A stretch of 64,000 nucleotides of DNA from the NCBI GenBank assembly GCA_964247055.1, contig OZ176052.1:7316001-7380000 (forward strand). Direction: 5' to 3'. The notes below the pieces were generated by a model. That model was not told the origin of the DNA. It worked only from the letters and a program-made list of their open reading frames with translations, and did not search any database. This stretch comes from Paragordius varius (Eukaryota; Animalia; Nematomorpha). Of the stretch, positions 1-62,648 are shown piece after piece (within the stretch, counting starts at the first letter, position 1; each line of letters begins with the position of its first letter). A program made the position numbers and the translations under genes.

Positions 1-544
1 TTGTAATAACCCCAATTACGGAAAAAACGGATGGCTTAACATCACCCTAATAAATATTTTGCCCATTGGTTCAAAATAAATATCAATTTTATTCGATAAT
101 AAATATATTAGTTAATATTTAGGGATATTTTTTAAAATAAATATAATTCCTGGTCATTGGCTCATCACAAGGGTTTAAAAATTCGTAAACCTCAATAGTT
201 TGTAGGATAGACCGCACTTTTAACATCTATAACTTAAAAAAGGAGATTTTTTGAAAATAGAAAAAAGGCTCATTTATTTTTAGGCGTTGTTTGTTTGAAA
301 GGTCATTGTATAATAAGTTGACTATAATTCTTTATTTTGTAATTTTTCAGACATAATATTAACTGTTTGAAATTTTACAAAATATATAAAAAAGCGAATT
401 TGACCCTAGTAAAAGATTAGGTTAACCACATATATCTTAATATTTAGATTTTATATGTAGTATTGGGTTGCGCAAATCGAGTAACTTCTGAAGAAGCCAT
501 GTGCATTTTTAAAATTAATATATAATCAATGTGTCATTTCCATT

Positions 545-1700
545 TAAGGGGTAGTCATAAGTGTTTACCGGTTTTTTGATAAAATCATGTAAGGAAACTA
601 ATTATTTAGTTAATACAAAACATCGAACGGCTTCTACATATTTGTCCCATCTCTCAGCTAATATATATAAAAGTGTCGTGCCAGAAAAACCGATTGACTT
701 TTGCGGTAAACCATATGTCAAACCACTTTCTAACTTCCTCAAAATTCCTGAAGAGCTGCTCTGCGAGGGTGCTTCATTGATGGTTGTATTAGTCAGACGC
801 TGGGTCAGAAAACGGGTGCGAAATTTCCCATTTTCAAGGTGTCTTTCACTGGTTTTTTTGTGTTAGGCTGCATTGTCAGTAGCAAATTTGCCATGTCTTC
901 TGGTCTATTCCGGTCATTATTCGATTAATCACGGATTAATCAGTCCTTTGTTGGCGATAGTGTGTGTATTAACGGTTACACCAGATTAAAGTTTAACTAA
1001 ATAGTATCTCTCTGTTCCCGCCAGACACAGAGCACGGTTTTTTTCCAGGAGGGATTTGGCATTGGTGACGCTTGGCAAGGGCCACGATTTATACGACTTT
1101 AATATACAATTAAAGTCATTTCTCATCACCCGTCAAAATCCGAAATGATTTTTCGTGACGCTGAAGCAGGACTTCATAAGACATTTTGCGATTTTAGATT
1201 TGACGTTAATCATAATTGCGAGGACCCATTTACTGATTTTATAGGTCTTTGCCCATTGCGCTTAGACATCTATTGATTGTTTTTTGTGGTGCATGTATGC
1301 TACTTGATTGTTATTAAGTGTAAGTTGGGTCATCTAATAATTCTAGCACTTTAGCGTCTTCGCAGTTGTGTGATTCAGCAGAACGTCCACATGCTTACGC
1401 ATGAAACCATACGTGTTAATAGGTAGAGCATGTCATATGCTTTTGCCAATAAACCATACTTTTAATAGCCTTTTCTTTTAAAAGCAACGCGTGCCGCAAA
1501 TGTTCTTTTGCAGGCTTAATATTTAACATAATTTAATGATAACAATAAGATGCCAGTTTTTGTCGCACTCTTGTATGTGTTGTTGTTTATTGTCAGATGA
1601 ACAAAATGGGGTCTTTCACAAATTAATAGTCTGCGAATTCGCTGATGTCATCTGTTAGTAAAATCGGTAATAACAATGACTACACCTAAGCAAGCAAATT
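545..1700 (-). mobile_element. Heavily decayed, internally deleted Gypsy/Mag-type LTR retrotransposon remnant
   Basis: Island richer in GC than its flanks. Frame-broken minus-strand translations resemble, in order: a zinc knuckle (RCSHC), a protease start (HLTINNNTYKSATKTG), an integrase Zn finger (HFG..VMRNDFNCILKS / CQASPMPNPSWKKP), the integrase core (ATDNA) and FLTQRLTNTTINEAPS..ILRKL. Boundaries are approximate. Confidence 0.45.
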
Positions 1701-3138
1701 AATATTTCATAATACACACAACAAAATTCAGGTCATAAATCCCAAATAATAATTTGATATTTTACGTTTTTTGGAGGCCATTGGATTATATAAGAGCCGA
1801 GGTTTGGTGATAACTTTTTAAATTATGACATCAAAATAGATTATCTAATAAACATACATGCTTTCAATCAAAATAAATGCAAAATTTTGTTCTTCGCTAG
1901 AAAAGCATTAATATATTATGACACTATCAAAGATAATGCTGACTATTCTAATCAGATTTTATAATTAAAGATATTAAAGTTTGGGAAGCGAAAACAAAAG
2001 TCAGAAAGTAAGAAAATGGCTAATTTCGCCCCAAATGTCTCCCTATTATACTGCATCATAATTCGTAAAGCTAAATTCTTTGTCGAACATTTCATTTTGA
2101 TATTGATAGAAAACAGATTATGCATGTTCGTTCCAATTGCCACCGAATACTAACTAGGATATGAGTATGACATTCAATCTGATATCAGATTTCAATGCAG
2201 GAACCCCCACATTGTCGTTGTTAATATAAAGCTTTTGGCTTGATACAATAAAAGTTTTTACGCTTTAATAATAAAATGATTCTAAACTGTATATTATTTT
2301 AAAGAAAAAGAAGGCTTTCAAAAATCTAAGGAGAACGGCAAAAATTTTTTATAAAAAAGTTAAAACCATTTCATAAAATAACATCTGAAATAGATCAACA
2401 TAATTTTACCAAAATTTGAAATTTAATGCAAAGTATGCTTTTTAAAATTGATTTTCTAATATATATCGTGATCCCAGTTTTAGTTTTAAAGATCCATTAA
2501 AACGAACACAAATTGCAACCTTGGAAACTCGATAAAAAATAATTAAGTTATGAAACAAAATGGTTATACTTTTTAAATATAATTTATCATATATATTTGT
2601 GAAAATTATTTATAAAATGGTTTATTTGTAATTGGTGTAAAATTTGCTCTTGATAATTAATCTATGTTTATCAAAAGATTCATTAACCCACACTCCAAAA
2701 ACATTATAAGAATTACGCTGTCTCTCTACCAAAGTGCATATAATTCACCAGGGTAGCTATTTATTATGATGCCTTATCTAGTATGAAGATTACTTATTCT
2801 GTTTATAAAGGGTGACAGTAAATGTATCAGGGGCTGAAAATCCACTATTTCTTTTCATATGTTCTTGAATTCAAACTAGAAAACATATAAATCCTTTGTA
2901 TGTATTAACTAAGTTTGGCGCTCCATCGTAGAATTCTGCATTTATTTATATTTTGTTATTATATAATCGAATTCCAAATTTAATCTTAAGTTACCGCTTA
3001 ACCATTACAACCATATAATATAATCGTTTTTCTTTTATCCTTTTAACTGATAAAAAACCTAAAATAAAGAATGTTTCGATAGCATGTTTAAATATATACA
3101 ACAGCAGATGTGGCACAAAAGATAATCCATAAAAGAAT

Positions 3139-3885
3139 ATGATTATGTTTTTATTAATTATTTTATTAAGTTTGTCCTTGACCATGCAAAAAATAATTGA
3201 CCTTCGCGACGCAATAAATTGTGACGAAATACAAAATGGGACCCGAGCTATCCTTGTATGGCCTAATGGTAAAATTCTTGATGCAAGAATAGCCCTGGGT
3301 GAGGATAAGTCATTGTATATCATGTTTGGAAAATTCGATGAGGATTGGACATATTTGAATGAAATATCAAAAAATATTCAAATTGAATTAATCAATCAAA
3401 CAGATTTGCACAATCTACTTAAGATTGTTGAAACCTATTTCCAAAAATATGGCAGAAAAATTGAATTATCGATAGAGAGCGACATTATATTGTCTATGCA
3501 AAATCGTGAAAGTGTTAACCCCTCAAGTATATTAGTACGACCCTTTACAAATATCAGGAAATCAGTATTAATGTGTTTAGAACGAAAAACATATTCAGAA
3601 CTTACTCGAGTTACAATAACGCTTGATAGACAACACATTAGATGTTTTGGCTCGCCCAAAGGCAATAGTTGTGGAAAATGTGGACTGCCTGCAAATAATC
3701 AATTGTTTGGACCTTTATTTATAACTCATGTTTTTCTAAGCGCAAACGGTAGTGGTGCCTATGCAGAAGATAAGCAATGGAGAAGAAATCAATTTACATT
3801 CCGTGGTACTTATTATAAACTACTTTTAAAATTACAGGATTGCACATCCCACTTAACGGTTGATGATACCTTATCTGTAGATTAA
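3139..3885 (+). CDS. Intronless 248-aa ORF with predicted N-terminal signal peptide; unknown function
   Basis: A 747-nt ORF in very AT-rich DNA, where stop codons are frequent. It starts with a hydrophobic stretch (MIMFLLIILLSLSLT), has non-repetitive composition and a CFG...CGKCG cysteine cluster. No family recognised. Confidence 0.55.
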   Translation: MIMFLLIILLSLSLTMQKIIDLRDAINCDEIQNGTRAILVWPNGKILDARIALGEDKSLYIMFGKFDEDWTYLNEISKNIQIELINQTDLHNLLKIVETYFQKYGRKIELSIESDIILSMQNRESVNPSSILVRPFTNIRKSVLMCLERKTYSELTRVTITLDRQHIRCFGSPKGNSCGKCGLPANNQLFGPLFITHVFLSANGSGAYAEDKQWRRNQFTFRGTYYKLLLKLQDCTSHLTVDDTLSVD

Positions 3886-51418: not shown

Positions 51419-54144
51419 CAGGGGTGGCCACACTTTTTTTGTCGCGAGCTTTTTTTTTGGCTTTTTTGTTAAAAAAAGAGTTCGCGGTCACCCAGAAATA
51501 TTTATCAAAAAAACTCAATCAACACTTTAAATGATGTATATACCTGCTTTACAGATTAGAGTGACTTGTTTAAACCATTTTAAAATTGTAATTTTTTTAT
51601 CTATCAACCAAATACAAAAATAATTTTAATTAAAAGACAACGGGTTATTATCTACCTTAATTTTTTAACCAACATAAAACACTTCAAAATATTTATTTAT
51701 TAAATTTCTATTATATGAAATTTTACAATATAAAAATTTAAACAATGCATTTGAAATTACAGGGGAGAATACATTATGATACAAAAAATAAAAGAAATAA
51801 AAAATAGCATTCCAATTTAGAACCATAATTTAAACATAAATAAGAGTACATTAAAATTGTATCAGTTTTAATTCTATCCACATATTTTTTAGTAAATCGG
51901 CTTTTTCCTAAGCGAAAATACAACTCGATAAACATCCATATTTAATAAAGAAAAAAATATTTAAAACGCCCGACTGCGAAAAAATTCAGAAAGTTTATCT
52001 AAATTAGGTTCAAATGAAGTTAAAGCAATTCTCAAACATGATTCTAAATGTTTATTAGTTAATTGTGACTTCTGTTTAGTTTTGATAGCATTCATAATTG
52101 AAAAAGCCGATTCACATAAATATGTGGATCCAAAAAAAGAATTGAATAATGCAGAGGTTTTCCAAATATGGGGGTATTTATCTTTATTTATAAATTTATA
52201 TATATCTGATCCTAATGATTTTAGATGGATATCGCATTTAACATTTATTAATTCCTCTTCCAACTCTGCTAAATTTGGTACACCAAGAAAGTGGCTGAGT
52301 TTTTGAGCAATATATTCAACATTATTATTATTATTAAATGGGCATGATAAAAAAATAGCGATGTCTAGTTTATTTATAGATGAAAATCGTTTTTCAAAAT
52401 CATTAATAAGCAGACCAATATCATCTGCATATTTTTCAAAAGAGAGATTCTCTATTTTTTCAGACACCGCTGCCAGATTAAAAAAAATGTTTTAAATCTC
52501 GGTTTTTTAATTGTGTTTCTACTACTGTTAGTGTTTCCTTAAAAGATTTTAAAGCACCCATCATATCCATTATTGTTTTATCTTTTCCTTGTAATTGGAT
52601 GTTTAATTTATGCAATTTTTCCGTGATATCGCATAAAAATGCAAGATCAAGCAGCCAATCTTGATCTTTCAATTCAGGGTATGAAAATTTAGAATTCTCT
52701 AAAAAAATTTCTATTTGTGGTAAAAGTTGCCTAAATCTAATTAAAAATGCGGCACGACTCAACCACCTTACATCAGTATGTAATAAAAGTTCTCCATATT
52801 CCACGCCGCACTCATTTAACAAAATTCGAAATTGGCGGCGGGACAAGCTTTTTGTTCGAATGGCGTTAACAATTTTAAAACAGGGGTTCATTACATGATG
52901 GTATTTTAAAACTTTTGAACATAAAACTTGATTATGGATTATACAATGGTAATCAATGAACTTGGGAAATGCACTGTGATTTTTACATAAAGCGATAAAG
53001 CCGTTGTTAACGCCAATCATAGCTGGAGCTCCATCAGTAGTTATAGAGATGGGAAGTTTCGTATCTGTGATAAATTTATAAAAAGAATCAAAAATATCCT
53101 GCCCTCTGGTTCGTTTGTGGAGAGGTATTATAGTTAATAATTCCTCCTTTGCAGATAAATCACTAAATATCATACGAATAAAAATGCATAATTGGGCGAT
53201 TCCAACATAATCGGTGGACTCATCGAGTTGCAAGGAAAAAATATACAGTTATTAATATTTTCATGTAAAATTTCATCAAGATTATTACTAATATCTTCAG
53301 CCCTGCGCATAACGGTATTTCTCGATAAGCTTATGCTTTTAATAGCTGTCATAATATTATTTTTGTTATCAAAATTTTCAAATAAAATATCACAAGTGCT
53401 AATAAAGGCTTCTTTAAATATTTCACCATCTTGGAATGGCTTATTGTTCCGAATGAGTATTTCCGCTACCTTGAATGAAGCAATCGTAGCATTTTTATAG
53501 TCTTTGTTGTATTTAAGTATGCTATTTTGTGAGGCGGATAATTGTTCTTTTAATTCCTTTACTTTAATGTTGCGTTCTTGAGTTTGTAAGGGGTAGTTTT
53601 TGGAGTAATGTGGATGCAGAGATCTATAATGTCTTTCAATATTTGACTTTTTGGGCAAAGCAACAGTACTATTGCATATTAGACAGGTGCATGTTTCATT
53701 TATCATAATAAAAAAGTATTCATGCTCCCAATCTTTCTTGTATCTGTACAACTTTTTTTGGCTCATTCTAAAATATAAGTTTTAAAAACCTACTTTTGGT
53801 GTATCAAATCAAATCTAACTTCACGATTATGCTTCTGATTTATGAATAAGCTTTGCTCAAAGTTTTGATATATTCAAGGGAAATGACTGATTTTAAGTTT
53901 TAATGCAAATGCTCCAAAACATATGAATTATAAATAATAAAATAATTTTTTTACACCCTTTTCTTAGACGTTTTTTTTTAATTTAAACCGTATTTTTTTG
54001 TATTTTAAATTTAAATTCGCTCAGAAGTAGCCAACTATCCGAAAAAAATCAATAAAATTTTTTAAAAAAAATATTTTCAGGCGGTCACTTTTTGAGTTGT
54101 CGCGGTCACGAAAGTGACCGCGGTCACCTCGTTGGCCACCCCTG
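51419..54144 (-). mobile_element. Full-length hAT (Buster/SPIN-like) DNA transposon; transposase split by two frameshifts
   Basis: 12-bp TIR CAGGGGTGGCCA and perfect 8-bp TSD GTCTACCG (51411-51418, 54145-54152; nnnTAnnn as in the Buster group). ORF pieces 53766-53170, 53233-52478 and 52467-51961 carry a BED finger (CLIC...RHY..LH), QLDESTD, TTDGAPAM, HCIIH, VRWLSRA and FGSTYLCESAFS. Confidence 0.95.
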
Positions 54145-54239: not shown

Positions 54240-55280
54240 TTCATCATCATTCATTTGTATGGGGATTCGCCATTAAATGACGGTACACCCGTTTTTTCCA
54301 CTCTTCTCTTGATTTGGCTAATTCTAGATTTAAATTGAGCGATTCGGGGTTATTAATTATTGTGTTGAGCCATGTGGTATGGGGTCGGCCAGATTTCGCT
54401 GGTAGTTCAACCGAGTAATTTTTCATAGTTTTAAGAATGTATCTTGCCGTCTCTCAACATGTCCAGCCCATTGTAACCGGAGATTTCTGATGACGTTGTT
54501 GATGGGGTTGAGATTGAGTATATGGTACGGGTTTATGGATTCGGTATAATTGAATTTAGAGGGATTGTGTGCAAATAATATTGTTTTCAATAATTTGGAT
54601 TCAGCGTTTATGAGTTTGGACTCATTTGTTTTTGACATCGGCCAGGATTCAGATGCATATGTGAGAACGGGACGGATGGCTGTAGCGTAAATGGCACATT
54701 TAGTTTGTAACAAATTTATTATTAATTTTAACGAATGGTATTTTTTCCACATTTGTGATATGCGATGCTTAATTGCATGTTCTATTCCTCCACCGGCTGA
54801 TATCATATCGCCCAAATAGCAAAAACTGCTCACTGTTTCCATATTGAAAGGGTTGGGAATCGAGTTGATTGTTAAATTAATATTATTATTTAAACATGCC
54901 GAGGTAGTTTTTATCGTAATCATTTATAGATTTGAGGCTACTACATTTTTTGTGTACCCATAGAAGACAAGAATTGCAGCGTACAGAATTTGATTTAACT
55001 TCTTTTCTACATACGCTGCATGGGTTTTTAGCGGTGAGATTATCGTACATTAATTTGGTTTTGAGAAATTGACTTTGACACCATAACTTTTTAAGGTGTC
55101 ATTCCACAGACGAATTTTCCCTATGAGATCGCTTTCCGATGTCGATGATATTACGAGGTCATCGGCGTAAAGAATTTGGTGTGCACATTTCTGGTAAATT
55201 TATCCATTTTTTTTAAAAAGGGACTACAAATGAGTTACTTTTTCTAGCCCTTGATCCCAGCTGTGAACACAATTTCAAAA
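54240..55280 (-). mobile_element. 5'-truncated RTE-like LINE fragment with the same Cys-finger-in-RT architecture as 9095-12404
   Basis: ILYADDLVI; CSVCRKEVKSNSVRCNSCLLWVHKKC; FCYLGDMIS; YASESW; LRLQWAGHVERR. Confidence 0.85.
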
Positions 55281-55752: not shown

Positions 55753-58700
55753 TCAAGATTTCATTTTCAATAACATAATTCGCAATTCTATAAATTCTTC
55801 AATATCCTTTTTCATATCTTGGCTAAACACCTAAAAATTTAAATTAATTAACATACCCTATTCCCAATCAAATTTTGTAGTCCATAGTACCATACGTTAT
55901 ACTAAATAATAATATATTAAAAAGAAAATATATAACCTACGGAAATTCCGTAAGATAGTGTAAAATTGAAATAAATATTAATGCATTCAGAGTATTATAT
56001 GAATCACTTCATCATTAGTAATCGCAGACCTTTTTGGTGCTTATTAGCACTCATCAGGATTCAAAAACCATTTAACTTGGTTTCACATATCATTTTGTAA
56101 TATATTCAACTTGAAATCTTTGATAATGCAGTCGGTAATACAAAATACTCAATATTTATAAACGAAAAAAATGAGAAAATTTAAATTCTAATTTTGAGTA
56201 AACCAATAAAATTTAAAAAATTTTGAGAGAACAACGGGGTAAAGCTGAGAACCGAAACCGGTTCAGATTCGTTAATTAAATTCTGGTCTAAAGTCACCAT
56301 GATAATATTTTTATTTGTGGCTGAAAAATACAGATGTGGGATTTAGATTTTTAAACCAAATTCTCTTACCAAATATCACCGATGGAATCATGAATTTAAT
56401 TAATATAAAAAATTATTAAATTTATCCATTGATTTGATCTTCAATTATTTCATACAATATTAAAGTAAAACAATAATTATGTTAAAAATTCATTAACTAA
56501 AAAACTAGCTAAAAAACTTACACTATGTTCATCAGGAGCTAACAATGAAAGTGAACCCCCTATTGTGTTAAAATCTTCGGATGATCCCCGCAAGTATAAC
56601 GAGTTTGATGATATGGGCTAAAAAATTTATTTAAGCGAAATAATTTAATCATTATAATAAAATAAATATTGCAATAAATATTTTGACTTTTCAATTCCTC
56701 TAAGCTTAAATCATTGAATTCTTCAATACATTTTGGGTTAGTATAACCAGTGGCAATTTTATATTAGAATCTTTTTCAAAATGATATTAGGCGAAATTTA
56801 AAATAAAACAATTTTTGGCCTTATAAGCGCCCTTATTTTAACTTGAACATTTAGCCATATTTTATACTTTATTTTTTAAGAAAATTGTTAAAAATATAAA
56901 TAATTAAAATTAGGTGCATATAATTAAAACTTAACAGAAACAAACTATCCTAATACGAAAAAATAAAATAATTTATTGAAGTGAATACTTTTTTCTGTGG
57001 CTTCTGCATAGGTGATGAATCCAAGGGACCTGTGGATATTTTGTTAGTGCTAATATCGAGATTTATATTTTTGATCATTACTATATAATAATTAATAATA
57101 TTAGACTAAGTACAGTAAAGAGCATGTATGCCGTTTTTATTCTCAATGATATATGTAAATGTATGTGAGTAAGAATGAATTATTTTTGTTTTAATTTGTT
57201 AACCCTATGTACAATTCAAAAAAGAAAAAATATGACTTTATATGTGTATAAAAAAATTTTAATTTTTAAAAGATTCCAATAACCATAACTTAAGCTAATT
57301 TCATGAAACTGTATAGTTAAAATTTATTTCATGCTGAATTGAACAAATATTGAATTCTTATACATTACTTATATTAACATTCTTGTGAACTATTCTGGCT
57401 GGATCCTGATGATCACAAAAAGTGTACATAAGAAATGTCTTATCGTTAGATAATTGGAGACAACAGTAACGATCTGTATCATAAAAATATTATTATATGC
57501 ACAGGTTCAAAAAGGTGGCAATATATAGCAACTAGAAGTGACATGCTATATAAACTGGGAATTACATATAATCTGATAATCAGCCTTGTGTCACTTTCGT
57601 AACAGTTTCTCATTCTTATTTATTTGAATCTAAAAAATACTATCCTAAATTTGGATTTATATAGATTAAATAAACACCGTTGTAAAAATAAATCAATAAA
57701 ACTACTCGATTCTAGCCTTGAATACTATTTTTTATATAACAACTACCATTATTGCTGCATCAATTAATGAATAAATGCGCGACATTAGAAAGATTTAGCT
57801 AATAATGATTTTTTAAGCATTTCTAATAGAGAATGGACCATTTAAATTTTATGTACAATTGTATTTCCACAAAGCATATATGTCAATCAACATGCGGCGC
57901 TTATAATAATTTGTGGCAAAATGACTTTAAACCTTTAATTCTTTGACTATTCTTTTGGGGTTGGTTTAGAAAAAACGTGCCTTGACACATAATATTCCAC
58001 CGGTTTTCCAAAACCATGTCTTCGACTTCCGGTAAAAAATTATTGTAAATCTCCCTTTATAACACAGTATATATGATACAAAAAAGATAATATTTATTTA
58101 ATTATTTAAAACAGGGGTCGACCTAGGGCTGGCTTGCCAAAACATTTAGAAAAATTAAAAAAAAATTTAATTAAAGTTTAGCCATAAGCGAGCCGAAACG
58201 CGCATGTATTGTTAAGAATAATTTTTTTCCATTATACACTATTATATTGACATAGAGTACTATTTTTATTATATTTTCAAACATGGGGCTCGTCTAAAAT
58301 CTTAACTGTTCATCTCCAAAAAAGGTTTCCAACCCCTGATTTAAAAATATTGCTAAATATCAGTTGATTGTGGGTCCGATTTAATTGCTAAACATTATGA
58401 CTGATGTGAATTTAAGTCAGTAAGATAGTAAGACGGTAAGACAGAAAGATAGTAAGACGGTAAGACAGTAAGACAGTAAGCATAAGACAGTAAAATATTT
58501 GTATAAAAAACATACATTCGTGATAAGTCTGCTAATAGGAGACTTAGGTGTTGCAATTAAAAGAAGAAGAACGTGATCCAGATATACTAAGAGAGGAGGT
58601 TGAATTAGCCTTAAAACAAATTCCTAACAACAAAGCGATGGGATTAGACAATATCCCAATAGAGTTCATAAAAGCTATTCCCGTTGAAAAGTTACACCAG

Positions 58701-61700
58701 TTATGTCAAAAGGTGTGGGAAACATGTGAGTGGCCAAACGACTGGACATCATCTGTATATCTCCCAATATACAAAAAAGAAGATGCACTCCAATGCGAGA
58801 ACTATCGGAACATATCTCTTATTAGCCACGCTAGTAAGGTCTTACTAAAAGTAATACAAAACAGGATGCACAGTATCATACAGACAGAAATACCAGAAAA
58901 TCAAGCCGGATTTATGAAGGGAAAGAGCACAAGAGACCATATCTCAAACATGAGAAGGATAATGGAAACATCAAAAGAGTATCAGAAAGAATTATACATG
59001 TGTTTTATTGATTACAGACAAGCCTTCGATTCAATTAACTATGACTCCTTGTGGGAAACATTAAAGTTAGTAGGGGTATCGTCTCACTTAATAAGATTGA
59101 TTAGCTCTCTCTATGTTAAACAAAGAGCGATTATTAGAACATCAGCGGGGGACACAGACGAAATACCTATCTTGAAAGGAGTCAGACAAGGGTGTTGCTT
59201 ATCCCCTTATCTGTTCAATATGTGCACAGAAATGATAATGAGGAAGTTGGATGGTAAAAATATTGGAGTAAGAATAGGAGGGAGAACAATCAATAATTTA
59301 AGGTTTGCAGACGATACCACTCTTATAGCTGAAAGTGCAAATGATTTGAAGGAATTGATTGAAGAGATTCGAAAGGAAAGTTTGAGGTATGGTCTTAGGC
59401 TTAATCCTAACAAAACCAAAATATTATGTACAGGAAAAAAGCCTACAATTTTTATAGAAGGAGTAGAAATAGAAATAGTTAAACAGTTAACGTTTTTGGG
59501 CGCAATAATTTCAGAGGATGGGTCTTCAACTCCTGACATCAGAAAGAGAATAGGATTGGGCAGAGAAGCGATGACCAAATTAATAAAGATTTGGAAAAAC
59601 AAAAGCGTAGAAGTTGAAACCAAAAAAAGATTACTCTACTGTTTCGTTCTCCGGTCACCACATATGGATGTGAGAGTTGGACTCTCAGAAAAAGGGACAA
59701 AGAAAGGCTCATGGCTTTTGAAAGGAGCTGCTGGCGTAGGATGCTAGGATACACCTGGAAGGATAAAATTAAGAATGGAAATCTAATTTCAGAAATAAAA
59801 CCTAAAACAAACATACTGGAGATAATTCTAAAAAGAAAGTTAACATATTTTGGTCATGTCATGCGATCGAATTCTCTGGAGAAAGATACAATGTTTGGGA
59901 AAGTAGAAGGGCAAAGGAAACGAGGCCGACCACCGATGAGGTGGTTGGATATGATAAAAGAAGAGACCAAAATGACACTGAAAGAGCTCAATATAGCGGT
60001 TAAAGATAGAAAAAAATGGAAAGAAATAGTTAAAACTATATCCAAAAAGTCGTTTACGACTTAGGAAAAACCAACCAACCATCAAAATTTCAAAGTATTA
60101 TAACTTAAAAAATATTGCATCTTTTTGAATTCTGTAAACTGGAGGATTGAAAGTCAGGTATCCTTTACAAATAATATATAGGGTTGAGTGAAAATGCGTA
60201 ATTCTTTCGACACGAAACTGAGTTTACTAAACACCTCCAAAAATTGTATAAATCTTAAAAAATATATAAAAAATCTTGGGTATTATAGAAGAAAATGGCA
60301 TCTATACCATTGTTTCTTATTTGGTAAATATTTTTTTTATATTTTTACAGTTTTAACAATTTTTTTTAAAAAAATTGTACTTCATGGTTCTGACAACAAC
60401 AAAAATAAATATAGCTAAATATTATTATAATAAATTTGAATTTTGTATTCTAAAATCAGCTTTTAACCCGATAATAACCGTTTTCCCCTAAAATTTTACA
60501 TGCAGAACGATATCAGATCCAGGGAAGTTTTGGTGGAATTACTTGAAAAGTATATTATTAATAAATATATAGATTTCCAATATTATATTCTAGAAAATCC
60601 AACAGTTTAGTTATGCACAAAGATCAATCAATCTTAACATATTTGTACATAGATCGCTATTTTCAAATATCCTTGCATCATGTACCCCTGGATATTTTAC
60701 CTCTAGAGATGTGAATATCTCATTGGAATTGATGGTGGCTTGTATATTAAAACTGTAAAAATTTTTTCGATTAAGATAATTCAACGATTCCTTGGTGGGT
60801 TTATTGATTTCAATGTGCGTGCAATCAATCGCACCAACGATACATGGAATTTTATATTTTTCCGCCCATAATGCCTGAGATGATTCCATTTCCGATTGAT
60901 TTTTGGGAAATCTTATCCACTTAGAACGTAGCCTACTACAATAATAACTAACATAAGAAATAATTTTAGTTGCGTAGCTACGTTCTCAGGTACTTTAACT
61001 TACCAACGATATGTGGAAATTTTCTTGAGGTATTTAGCCGACCCAGGATTCCAATATGGGGTTTCCAATGATTTTGGGATAGAACGTAGCTACGCAACTA
61101 AAATTATTTCTTATGTTAGTTATTATTGTAGTAGGCTACGTTCTAAGTGGATAAGATTTCCCAAAAATCAATCGGAAATGGAATCATCTCAGGCATTATG
61201 GGCGGAAAAATATAAAATTCCATGTATCGTTGGTGCGATTGATTGCACGCACATTGAAATCAATAAACCCACCAAGGAATCGTTGAATTATCTTAATCGA
61301 AAAAATTTTTACAGTTTTAATATACAAGCCACCATCAATTCCAATGAGATATTCACATCTCTAGAGGTAAAATATCCAGGGGTACATGATGCAAGGATAT
61401 TTGAAAATAGCGATCTATGTACAAATATGTTAAGATTGATTGATCTTTGTGCATAACTAAACTGTTGGATTTTCTAGAATATAATATTGGAAATCTATAT
61501 ATTTATTAATAATATACTTTTCAAGTAATTCCACCAAAACTTCCCTGGATCTGATATCGTTCTGCATGTAAAATTTTAGGGGAAAACGGTTATTATCGGG
61601 TTAAAAGCTGATTTTAGAATACAAAATTCAAATTTATTATAATAATATTTAGCTATATTTATTTTTGTTGTTGTCAGAACCATGAAGTACAATTTTTTTA

Positions 61701-62648
61701 AAAAAAATTGTTAAAACTGTAAAAATATAAAAAAAATATTTACCAAATAAGAAACAATGGTATAGATGCCATTTTCTTCTATAATACCCAATATTTTTTA
61801 TATATTTTTTAAGATTTATACAATTTTTGGAGGTGTTTAGAAAACTCAGTTTCGTGTCGAAAGAATTACGCATTTTCACTCAACCCTATATATTATTTGT
61901 AAAGGATACCTGACTTTCAATCCTCCAGTTTACAGAATTCAAAAAGATGCAATATTTTTCAAGTTATAATACTTTGAAATTTTGATAAGTCTCCTATTAG
62001 CAGACTTATCACGAATGTATGTTTTTTATACAAATATCTTACTGTCTTATGCTTACTGTCTTACTATCTTACTGTCTTACCGTCTTACTATCTTACTGTC
62101 TTAACGTCTTACTATCTTTCTGTCTTACCGTCTTACTATCTTACTGACTTAAATTCACATCAGTCTATATCTTAGCGAAATTATATATGTCATGATTTTT
62201 GGTTTAAAAATGTAATATGAATATTTATAATTTTAACCGCTATCCAAAGCAATCAGGTAATTACCATAAATATTAATAGGCCTAGACTTATTTTTGTTTT
62301 AATTACACTAAACAAGCTATATAACGCTTTTTAAAAAAATCAACGAATCATATTCATAATATTGAAACCAAAATATATATTTTAACATAAAAAGCTAAAA
62401 AATATCACGTAATACTTTATAACATTTTGGTCATTTTTATCAGTTGTGGGGATAATATCGTGGACTTTATTGGTGGAAAACTCAGGATCTGTCAGCAACT
62501 TGTGATAATTTATGGATTCAAAATTAAGGATTATTGTTTCAAAGGTTAAATGCCTATTTATGTAACTATCACTATTGGCTGAGACAACAAAATTGGAATT
62601 ATCCAACAGAAGTGAAAATCTTAATATTTCGCCTACGACCGTGCACAC
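55753..62648 (-). CDS. ELMO: ELMO/CED-12 family protein, C-terminal part (end of ELMO domain and PH domain); 5' exons not identified
   Basis: Phase-consistent GT-AG exon chain 62648-62416, 58054-57933, 57473-57369, 57080-56989, 56617-56522, 55901-55857, 55830-55753. Paired with recalled ELMO1 sequence: VCTVVGEILRFSL ~ VMQVVKEQVMRAL; EIYNNFLPEVEDMVLENRWNIMCQGTFF ~ [44 protein letters not shown] ~ FWYCRLSPNHKVLHY; LSLLAPDEHSYNVWYYGLQNLIG ~ [23 protein letters not shown]. Confidence 0.82.
58399..62165. mobile_element. Palindromic (foldback) PIF/Harbinger-derived element with two inverted transposase fragments
   Basis: Inner arms 60081-60986 and 61081-61986 (906 bp each) surround a 94-nt spacer. 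Outer arms are 58399-58545 and 61987-62165, with (AGTAAGAC)n subrepeats. 3-bp direct flanks TAT/TAT. HARBI1-like DDE motifs CIVGAIDCTHIEI, YLNRKNFYSFNIQA and YPGVHDARIF occur on both strands. Confidence 0.9.
58546..60080 (+). mobile_element. 5'-truncated RTE/BovB-like LINE inserted in the left arm of the palindrome
   Basis: RT motifs (KGVRQGCCLSPYLFN, RFADDTTLIA, TFLGAII, YFGHVMR, RGRPPMRW), one frameshift near 59650 and an (AACC)n tail. Removing it rejoins GAGACTT|ATCAAAATTT, which matches the intact right arm. Confidence 0.93.

Follow-up and report, generated by a model that had tools for sequence, protein, structure and literature searches.

We analysed a palindromic locus in a window of 64,000 nucleotides from the nematomorph Paragordius varius (contig OZ176052.1, positions 7,316,001 to 7,380,000, corresponding to G000:C3:7316001-7380000 of the 110.5-Mb assembly). 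Coordinates given without a contig name count from the first letter of this window. The locus, at 58399-62165, is in all probability a non-autonomous, rearranged and dead copy of a young PIF/Harbinger DNA transposon family with long terminal inverted repeats (TIRs), and as such a product of a known kind. An earlier note on the same DNA had read it as a candidate silencing locus comparable to maize Mu killer. That the locus is singular in this respect is not borne out by the genome search, which recovered at least 16 copies with TIRs of about 650 nt, at least 5 of which form longer palindromes, including the copy that carries the intact transposase gene. Taken alone, the window locus has nothing unusual for a dead copy of a transposon, and the surrounding family is more informative: at least five palindromes with differing junctions within one young lineage make the growth of very long TIRs legible from sequence.

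Anatomy of the window copy

An inverted-repeat search of the window returned two arms of 906 nt each, 60081-60986 and 61081-61986, lying 94 nt apart. These are the dimensions reported in the earlier note, which had also estimated about 3 differences between the arms; the base-by-base count gave exactly three mismatches, at 60107/61960, 60226/61841 and 60275/61792. Further out, 58399-58546 pairs with 61986-62165, the difference between these outer arm parts being four 8-bp subterminal repeat units. The whole element is flanked on both sides by the trinucleotide TAT (58396-58398 and 62166-62168), a target-site duplication (TSD) of 3 bp. In the earlier note, these flanks were taken to suggest that the palindrome was inserted as a unit. 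TAT is indeed found at both ends, but a TSD suits a rearrangement in place equally well.

The segments of the window copy were defined relative to the copy on contig C6 that bears the intact transposase gene (locus L051). On the left, the terminus (GACTGATGTGAATTTAAGTCAG...), with the outer left TIR and subterminal repeats of 8 bp (TAAGACAG/TAAGATAG/TAAGACGG type; 58399-58546, plus strand), is separated by an inserted retrotransposon (58547-60081, plus strand) from segment A (60082-60567, plus strand), the inner left family TIR, on which all three arm mismatches fall. Segment l (60568-60627, plus strand) corresponds to the first ~21 codons of a Myb/SANT-like open frame (IYRFPILYSRKSNSLVMHKDQ), fused to antisense transposase sequence. 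The latter forms segment C' (60628-60986, minus strand), an inverted duplicate of transposase codons ~82-201 that is identical to 61081-61439. The 94-nt spacer (60987-61080, plus strand) is single-copy and comprises transposase codons ~50-81, which run on into the right arm exactly as they do in the intact gene. The right arm then continues with segment C (61081-61439, plus strand), carrying transposase codons ~82-201, with l' (61440-61499, minus strand), which mirrors segment l and thus the beginning of the Myb/SANT-like gene, and with segment A' (61500-62165, minus strand), which is made of the right family TIR and terminus and has 8-bp subterminal repeats at ~62036-62150. This map agrees with the previous description in that the same DDE transposase fragment points outward in both arms and that the two termini correspond to one and the same end of the parent.

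In a Pfam profile search, the sequence encoded by the spacer and the right arm matched part of DDE_Tnp_4 (E 7.7e-12, positions 1-68 of the 158 in the profile), and the same fragment was found on the minus strand in the left arm. It keeps the first catalytic Asp (AIDCTH) and lacks the Asp of GDSGY and the Glu of IERVFG, so that the window copy cannot give rise to an active transposase. Of the Myb/SANT-like gene, only the ~21 codons mentioned above are retained. The window copy encodes no working protein.

About 487 nt of each 906-nt arm correspond to ordinary family TIR, and all three mismatches fall in this part. The locus-specific portion is an inverted duplication of 419 nt, comprising the ~21 Myb-like codons and transposase codons ~82-201, without a single mismatch. 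Over a TIR core of 511 nt the two arms diverge by 0.59%, the median divergence between family copies being 0.99%; over this core the window arms resemble each other no more than either resembles other family copies. The clustering of the mismatches in the outer TIR had suggested a copy tract ending within the TIR. This reading was dropped, since the clustering within the TIR part alone is not significant (p ~0.06) and similar gaps are present in other copies.

The inverted repeat at the arm/spacer boundary, noted previously as 10 bp long and as a possible mark of a fold-back origin, is present, with a length of 11 bp (61080-61090 and 61135-61145), and it pre-exists in the intact transposase gene on C6. 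It is the sole local inverted repeat of at least 10 bp in the 453-nt segment that contains it, and the arm ends 1 nt inside it, a coincidence of about 1 in 200 when judged post hoc. Neither element termini nor subterminal repeats were found at the centre of the palindrome, and the only TSD pair is that of the outer ends. The deletion junction between the transposase sequence and l' (61439/61440) is, according to the genome search, contiguous at the window locus only, where it occurs in both arms. Thus, the deletion preceded or accompanied the duplication.

The left-arm insert is a long interspersed nuclear element (LINE), i.e. a retrotransposon without long terminal repeats (non-LTR). It contains a reverse-transcriptase open reading frame (ORF) with one frameshift (RVT_1, E 1.2e-40) and ends with a ACCAACCAACCA tail, and comparison of its ends with those of other genomic copies shows it to be 5'-truncated. 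The LINE family is young and abundant, with 228 first-look candidates and 96-98% identity for the 39 other copies that were scored. We could confirm that the LINE is inserted in one arm only. It had also been proposed that this insertion dates the events relative to each other, which does not follow: the LINE sits in outer TIR sequence common to every member of the transposon family, and its order relative to the duplication therefore cannot be set.

The PIF/Harbinger family and its palindromes

The earlier note had proposed to search the genome for a parent Harbinger and for other palindromic copies with 3-bp TSDs. Using the right arm as query, this search found at least 15 further loci, each with paired inverted arms, 14 of them at 97-99% identity and an older one at 91-96%; at least 4 carry extended palindromes. 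Counting the window copy, a single PIF/Harbinger family is thus represented in the genome by no fewer than 16 young copies. Perfect 3-bp TSDs were observed in 14 of the 15 copies for which both ends were read, window copy included. The only one of these 15 fully read copies without a perfect TSD is the old copy, and the C6 copy, the left end of which was not read, stands outside this count. The 14 TSDs were ATA (three copies), TTA, TAA, TTT and AAA (two copies each), and TAT, ATT and CTA (one copy each). TSDs of PIF/Harbinger elements are classically TTA/TAA, which account here for 4 of the 14 only.

The sole intact transposase gene that was found belongs to the copy at C6:3942950-3946335 (locus L051, coding sequence G000:C6:3943730-3944731). 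The encoded protein of 334 aa matches the complete DDE_Tnp_4 profile (E 4.7e-34, profile positions 1-158 of 158). A second gene (MHKDQWDLLF...) adjoins one TIR in at least 9 copies. Its relatives in the genome match MADF_DNA_bdg (23.1 bits for a cut-off of 22) and Myb_DNA-bind_5 (E 7e-4), the family's own copy of the gene matching MADF below the cut-off (E 3e-3). On the basis of the matches of these relatives, the family was assigned to the two-gene PIF/Harbinger elements. The transposase and Myb/SANT-like genes are convergent, each abutting an identical TIR of ~650 nt (e.g. L066:147-503(+) and L055:1552-1860(-)), and the same convergent order was found in related families. The family thus combines the PIF/Harbinger traits of a DDE_Tnp_4 (IS5-like) transposase, a 3-bp TSD and a Myb/SANT-like second gene. 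As a side observation, the TIR may hold a putative promoter for both family genes.

In every copy of the assembly at least one of the two genes is not intact, so that transposition would need complementation between defective copies. Copies at different loci diverge by as little as 0-0.2%, and several Myb-like frames as well as one transposase frame are open; taken together, these observations indicate that the family moved very recently.

At least five copies of the family, including the window copy, have palindromes extending beyond the TIR, and their inner junctions differ from copy to copy. Extended palindromes were found at C2:1.019M (813-nt arms, 99.6% identity), at C6:8.276M (~760-nt arms), at C6:1.12M (~945-nt arms) and, in the intact-transposase copy, at C6:3.94M (L051, G000:C6:3942700-3946600, element ~251-3649), where arms of 1,448 nt with 98.9% identity enclose a centre of 440 nt. 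The first three and the window copy are each made of two Myb-gene-side halves. The C6:3.94M copy is made of two transposase-side halves: in addition to the 334-aa gene (ORF 1031-2035 of L051), its other arm carries a truncated, 241-aa inverted duplicate of the transposase gene. A further example comes from a sister Harbinger family, the transposase of which is 66-70% identical at the protein level. This family contains a 3.1-kb palindrome (L067, G000:C1:12740800-12744000) with arms at 47-1371 and 1804-3137 (91-95% identity), in which the transposase fragments face outward like those of the window copy; it is an older, independent instance of the same layout. The differing palindromes among the copies, together with that of the sister family, show that palindrome formation is recurrent in these elements in this genome.

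Origin of the palindromes and competing explanations

We infer that the palindromes likely originated by template switching between the long TIRs in the course of repair or replication. In the lineage of the window copy, an internal deletion would have brought transposase codon ~201 next to codon ~21 or so of the open Myb-like frame. The Myb-gene-side half, consisting of the transposase fragment, l' and the TIR, would then have been copied, inverted, in place of the other half, lengthening the palindrome from ~650 nt to ~1.05 kb and leaving a unique centre of 94 nt. In the proposed scheme, a nascent strand copying one end, either in gap repair after excision or in replication, would re-anneal on the other, identical TIR. 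After the switch the wrong half would be copied, and both nascent ends would follow the same template end. These ends would be of the same sequence and unable to anneal mutually, leading to end joining without homology. At the arm/spacer junction (...GCTACGTTCT|CAGGTAC...), compared with the progenitor AAAAAAA|CAGGTAC, no microhomology was found. On one side, the only strong hairpin in the vicinity would bring synthesis to a halt, the 94-nt spacer representing the extra distance that one strand would have covered.

A related process is documented in maize, where composite Ac/Ds insertions come from alternative transposition involving the termini of two nearby elements and re-replication (10.1101/2020.01.07.897926). 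In both cases the element's own aberrant transposition or replication yields inverted duplications able to give double-stranded RNA (dsRNA). They differ in that here the template switch seems to have taken place between the two ends of a single long-TIR element.

Several points weigh against this picture of the locus. The template-switch or repair origin was deduced exclusively from the anatomy of the copies, and neither an empty site nor a progenitor copy or intermediate turned up. The identity of the inner arm parts could also be maintained by gene conversion, in which case the duplication need not be recent. Finally, TIRs of PIF/Harbinger elements are typically of 14-25 bp (PMC2213677), and the family is atypical in this respect: the TIRs of its ordinary copies measure ~600-670 nt, with 8-bp subterminal repeats, and those of rearranged copies reach 1,448 nt. 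PIF/Harbinger elements usually have short TIRs, without this being a catalytic requirement, and the related Spy group has long ones (PMC4122938).

Long and variable TIRs are also known from Galileo, a foldback-like DNA transposon with long TIRs (PMC3688188), and from Spy itself (PIF/Harbinger-ISL2EU-Spy group), in which TIRs reach 1,474 bp and repeated expansion and contraction was inferred, the mechanism being left unidentified (PMC4122938). The present family resembles both in having TIRs of hundreds of bp whose length varies within the lineage. Spy, however, has no TSD and usually a single ORF, in contrast to the 3-bp TSDs and the Myb/SANT-like second gene observed here. Moreover, unlike in Galileo and Spy, the inner TIR boundaries vary among copies of one young family, so that the expansion can be read directly.

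A more functional reading of the window locus is that of a trans-silencer of the Mu killer type, in which a hairpin RNA produced by host read-through would be processed into small RNAs silencing the transposase of the family. We regard this as unlikely. The inverted duplication does cover 359 nt of transposase coding sequence (codons ~82-201 of 334) plus TIR, an intact gene exists at C6, and upstream, on the minus strand, lies an ELMO-domain gene directed toward the element. The inner 988 nt are predicted to fold into one continuous stem of ~447 bp (-780 kcal/mol, z = -72.6), which makes the predicted hairpin very stable, and a transcript across the window copy would form ~0.9-1 kb of dsRNA, to which transposase coding sequence would contribute ~360 bp. 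Two Piwi-domain loci (G000:C2:3353388-3355921 and G000:C1:12319268-12327742) speak in the same direction. On the other side, no match to an RNA-dependent RNA polymerase was detected, which is a weak negative; both this result and the count of Piwi-domain loci are lower bounds obtained from an exon-by-exon scan of the 110-Mb genome. The placement in an intron is unsupported (see the next section), and the divergence of 0-0.2% between some loci points to a family moving very recently. Hairpin potential is common to all members of the family and largest in the transposase source copy itself; the window locus adds little that is unique and is, structurally, no special killer candidate. In our preferred reading too, dsRNA resulting from such read-through would be a possible trigger of RNA interference (RNAi), as a side effect common to family members. 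A silencing role of the window locus is thus possible but, as far as its sequence goes, unsupported.

Precedents for such a role can be found in Mu killer, in the composite Ac insertions of maize (10.1101/2020.01.07.897926) and in Tc1 of C. elegans. Mu killer is an inverted duplication of part of MuDR (PMC3440606). Like the window copy, it has a TIR in two copies and an inverted duplication that covers a transposase gene in part, and a read-through hairpin from a flanking gene is conceivable here as well. The two differ in that Mu killer concerns a Mutator element in a plant and the window copy a PIF/Harbinger element in an animal. In addition, the window element has lost neither of its transposon termini and bears a TSD, and its hairpin structure is found family-wide, including in the source copy. 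In C. elegans, RNA read through Tc1 folds back by way of the TIRs (Sijen and Plasterk 2003, reviewed in PMC3878927), so that in an animal, too, dsRNA derived from TIRs is known to feed RNAi directed at a DNA transposon; the TIRs of Tc1, however, are short and non-coding.

The silencing idea can also be put at the level of the family, which would itself repeatedly make hairpin copies by copying one half onto the other, those located in or beside transcribed host genes, such as the window copy near the ELMO-domain gene, silencing the transposase in trans. We hold this version to be just as doubtful. If true, it would represent a counterpart of Mu killer in animals, and long-TIR DNA transposons would have an inherent way of limiting themselves. 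Should small RNAs arise from these copies, the family would offer a tractable animal case of a transposon making its own RNAi trigger.

With regard to the origin, a slightly less probable alternative is that an older, larger palindrome of two Myb-gene-side halves lost its centre by asymmetric deletion, leaving the 94-nt spacer. A larger palindrome of this kind is present in the sister family and internal deletions are common in the family studied here. Yet the 419-nt duplicated part shows no mismatch, as against ~1% divergence in the older C6 palindrome, and the rare transposase|l' junction is found in both arms and so predates the duplication. This scenario amounts to another order of events leading to the same kind of object. 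Template switching in an element that already carried the deletion remains our preferred account, all the more when compared with the insertion of two separate copies, head-to-head or nested, followed by a deletion. Such an event is very improbable given the single, outer TSD pair, a centre devoid of termini and subterminal repeats, and the presence in both arms of a deletion junction unique in the genome. Least credible is a fold-back assembly artefact: chimeric fold-back reads can occur in long-read assemblies, but the arms differ by 3 substitutions, by 32 bp in repeat number and by a one-sided 1.5-kb LINE, the asymmetric centre matches the intact gene, the flanks are unique, bear a TSD and lie 7.37 Mb inside a 14.4-Mb contig, and the same type of structure occurs at other loci.

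Host gene context and neighbouring sequences

The element had been placed wholly within an intron of an ELMO-domain gene. The gene itself was recovered upstream of the element, through an ELMO_CED12 match on the minus strand at 64450-64722 in window numbering (L058:2450-2722; 24.6 bits for a cut-off of 23.3, profile positions 136-176 of 176). The matched portion is predicted to be the C-terminal end of the domain, and its position and strand imply that the ELMO-domain gene reads toward the element. Among the 20 upstream minus-strand ORF pieces compared with Pfam, this is the only one matching ELMO_CED12. Whole-genome scans with PF04727, PF16457 and PF11841 gave no match in or beside the window; the ELMO_CED12 match was probably missed by the genome scan through the split of the gene into small exons.

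The intron, by contrast, could not be substantiated. The proposed splice model (donor 62415, acceptor 58055) is frame-consistent. It links a host ORF located upstream of the element (62385-62648, minus strand) to a proposed terminal exon of 51 codons (57904-58056, minus strand), which is single-copy in the genome and in frame with the model. This terminal exon lacks homology support: no relative was found in Pfam or in the PDB, and its sole match among 1.84 billion proteins was one spurious repeat protein. For the two exons flanking the proposed intron, the Pfam and PDB searches yielded nothing beyond a weak PH-like match of the upstream ORF. Inspection in the ESM Atlas of a 104-aa upstream piece suggests generic ARM-like features only. 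Moreover, the upstream frame has its own stop (62382-62384), ~220 bp before the element, so that the element may be located 3' of the gene. The element therefore lies either in the last intron or just 3' of the ELMO-domain gene. The exon-marker motif WCAGCTGW is absent from the whole window, which is uninformative as to the status of the exon.

Three further features were noted to the left of the element. A small dispersed repeat at 58202-58350, immediately adjacent to it, has at least 30 genomic copies with 69-84% identity; a transfer RNA origin or that of a short interspersed nuclear element was sought for the element's flank and nothing was found. On the minus strand, 54247-55050 contains a PHD-finger ORF (E 8.7e-6) followed by ORFs that resemble non-LTR reverse transcriptase in its C-terminal portion, and is probably another retroelement fragment. 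Finally, also on the minus strand, 52481-53766 contains an ORF of 198 aa next to another of 251 aa. The former has a zinc finger of the Spin-doc type (zf-C2H2_12, E 3.9e-10), and the region looks by eye like the remnant of a hAT/ZBED-type transposase.

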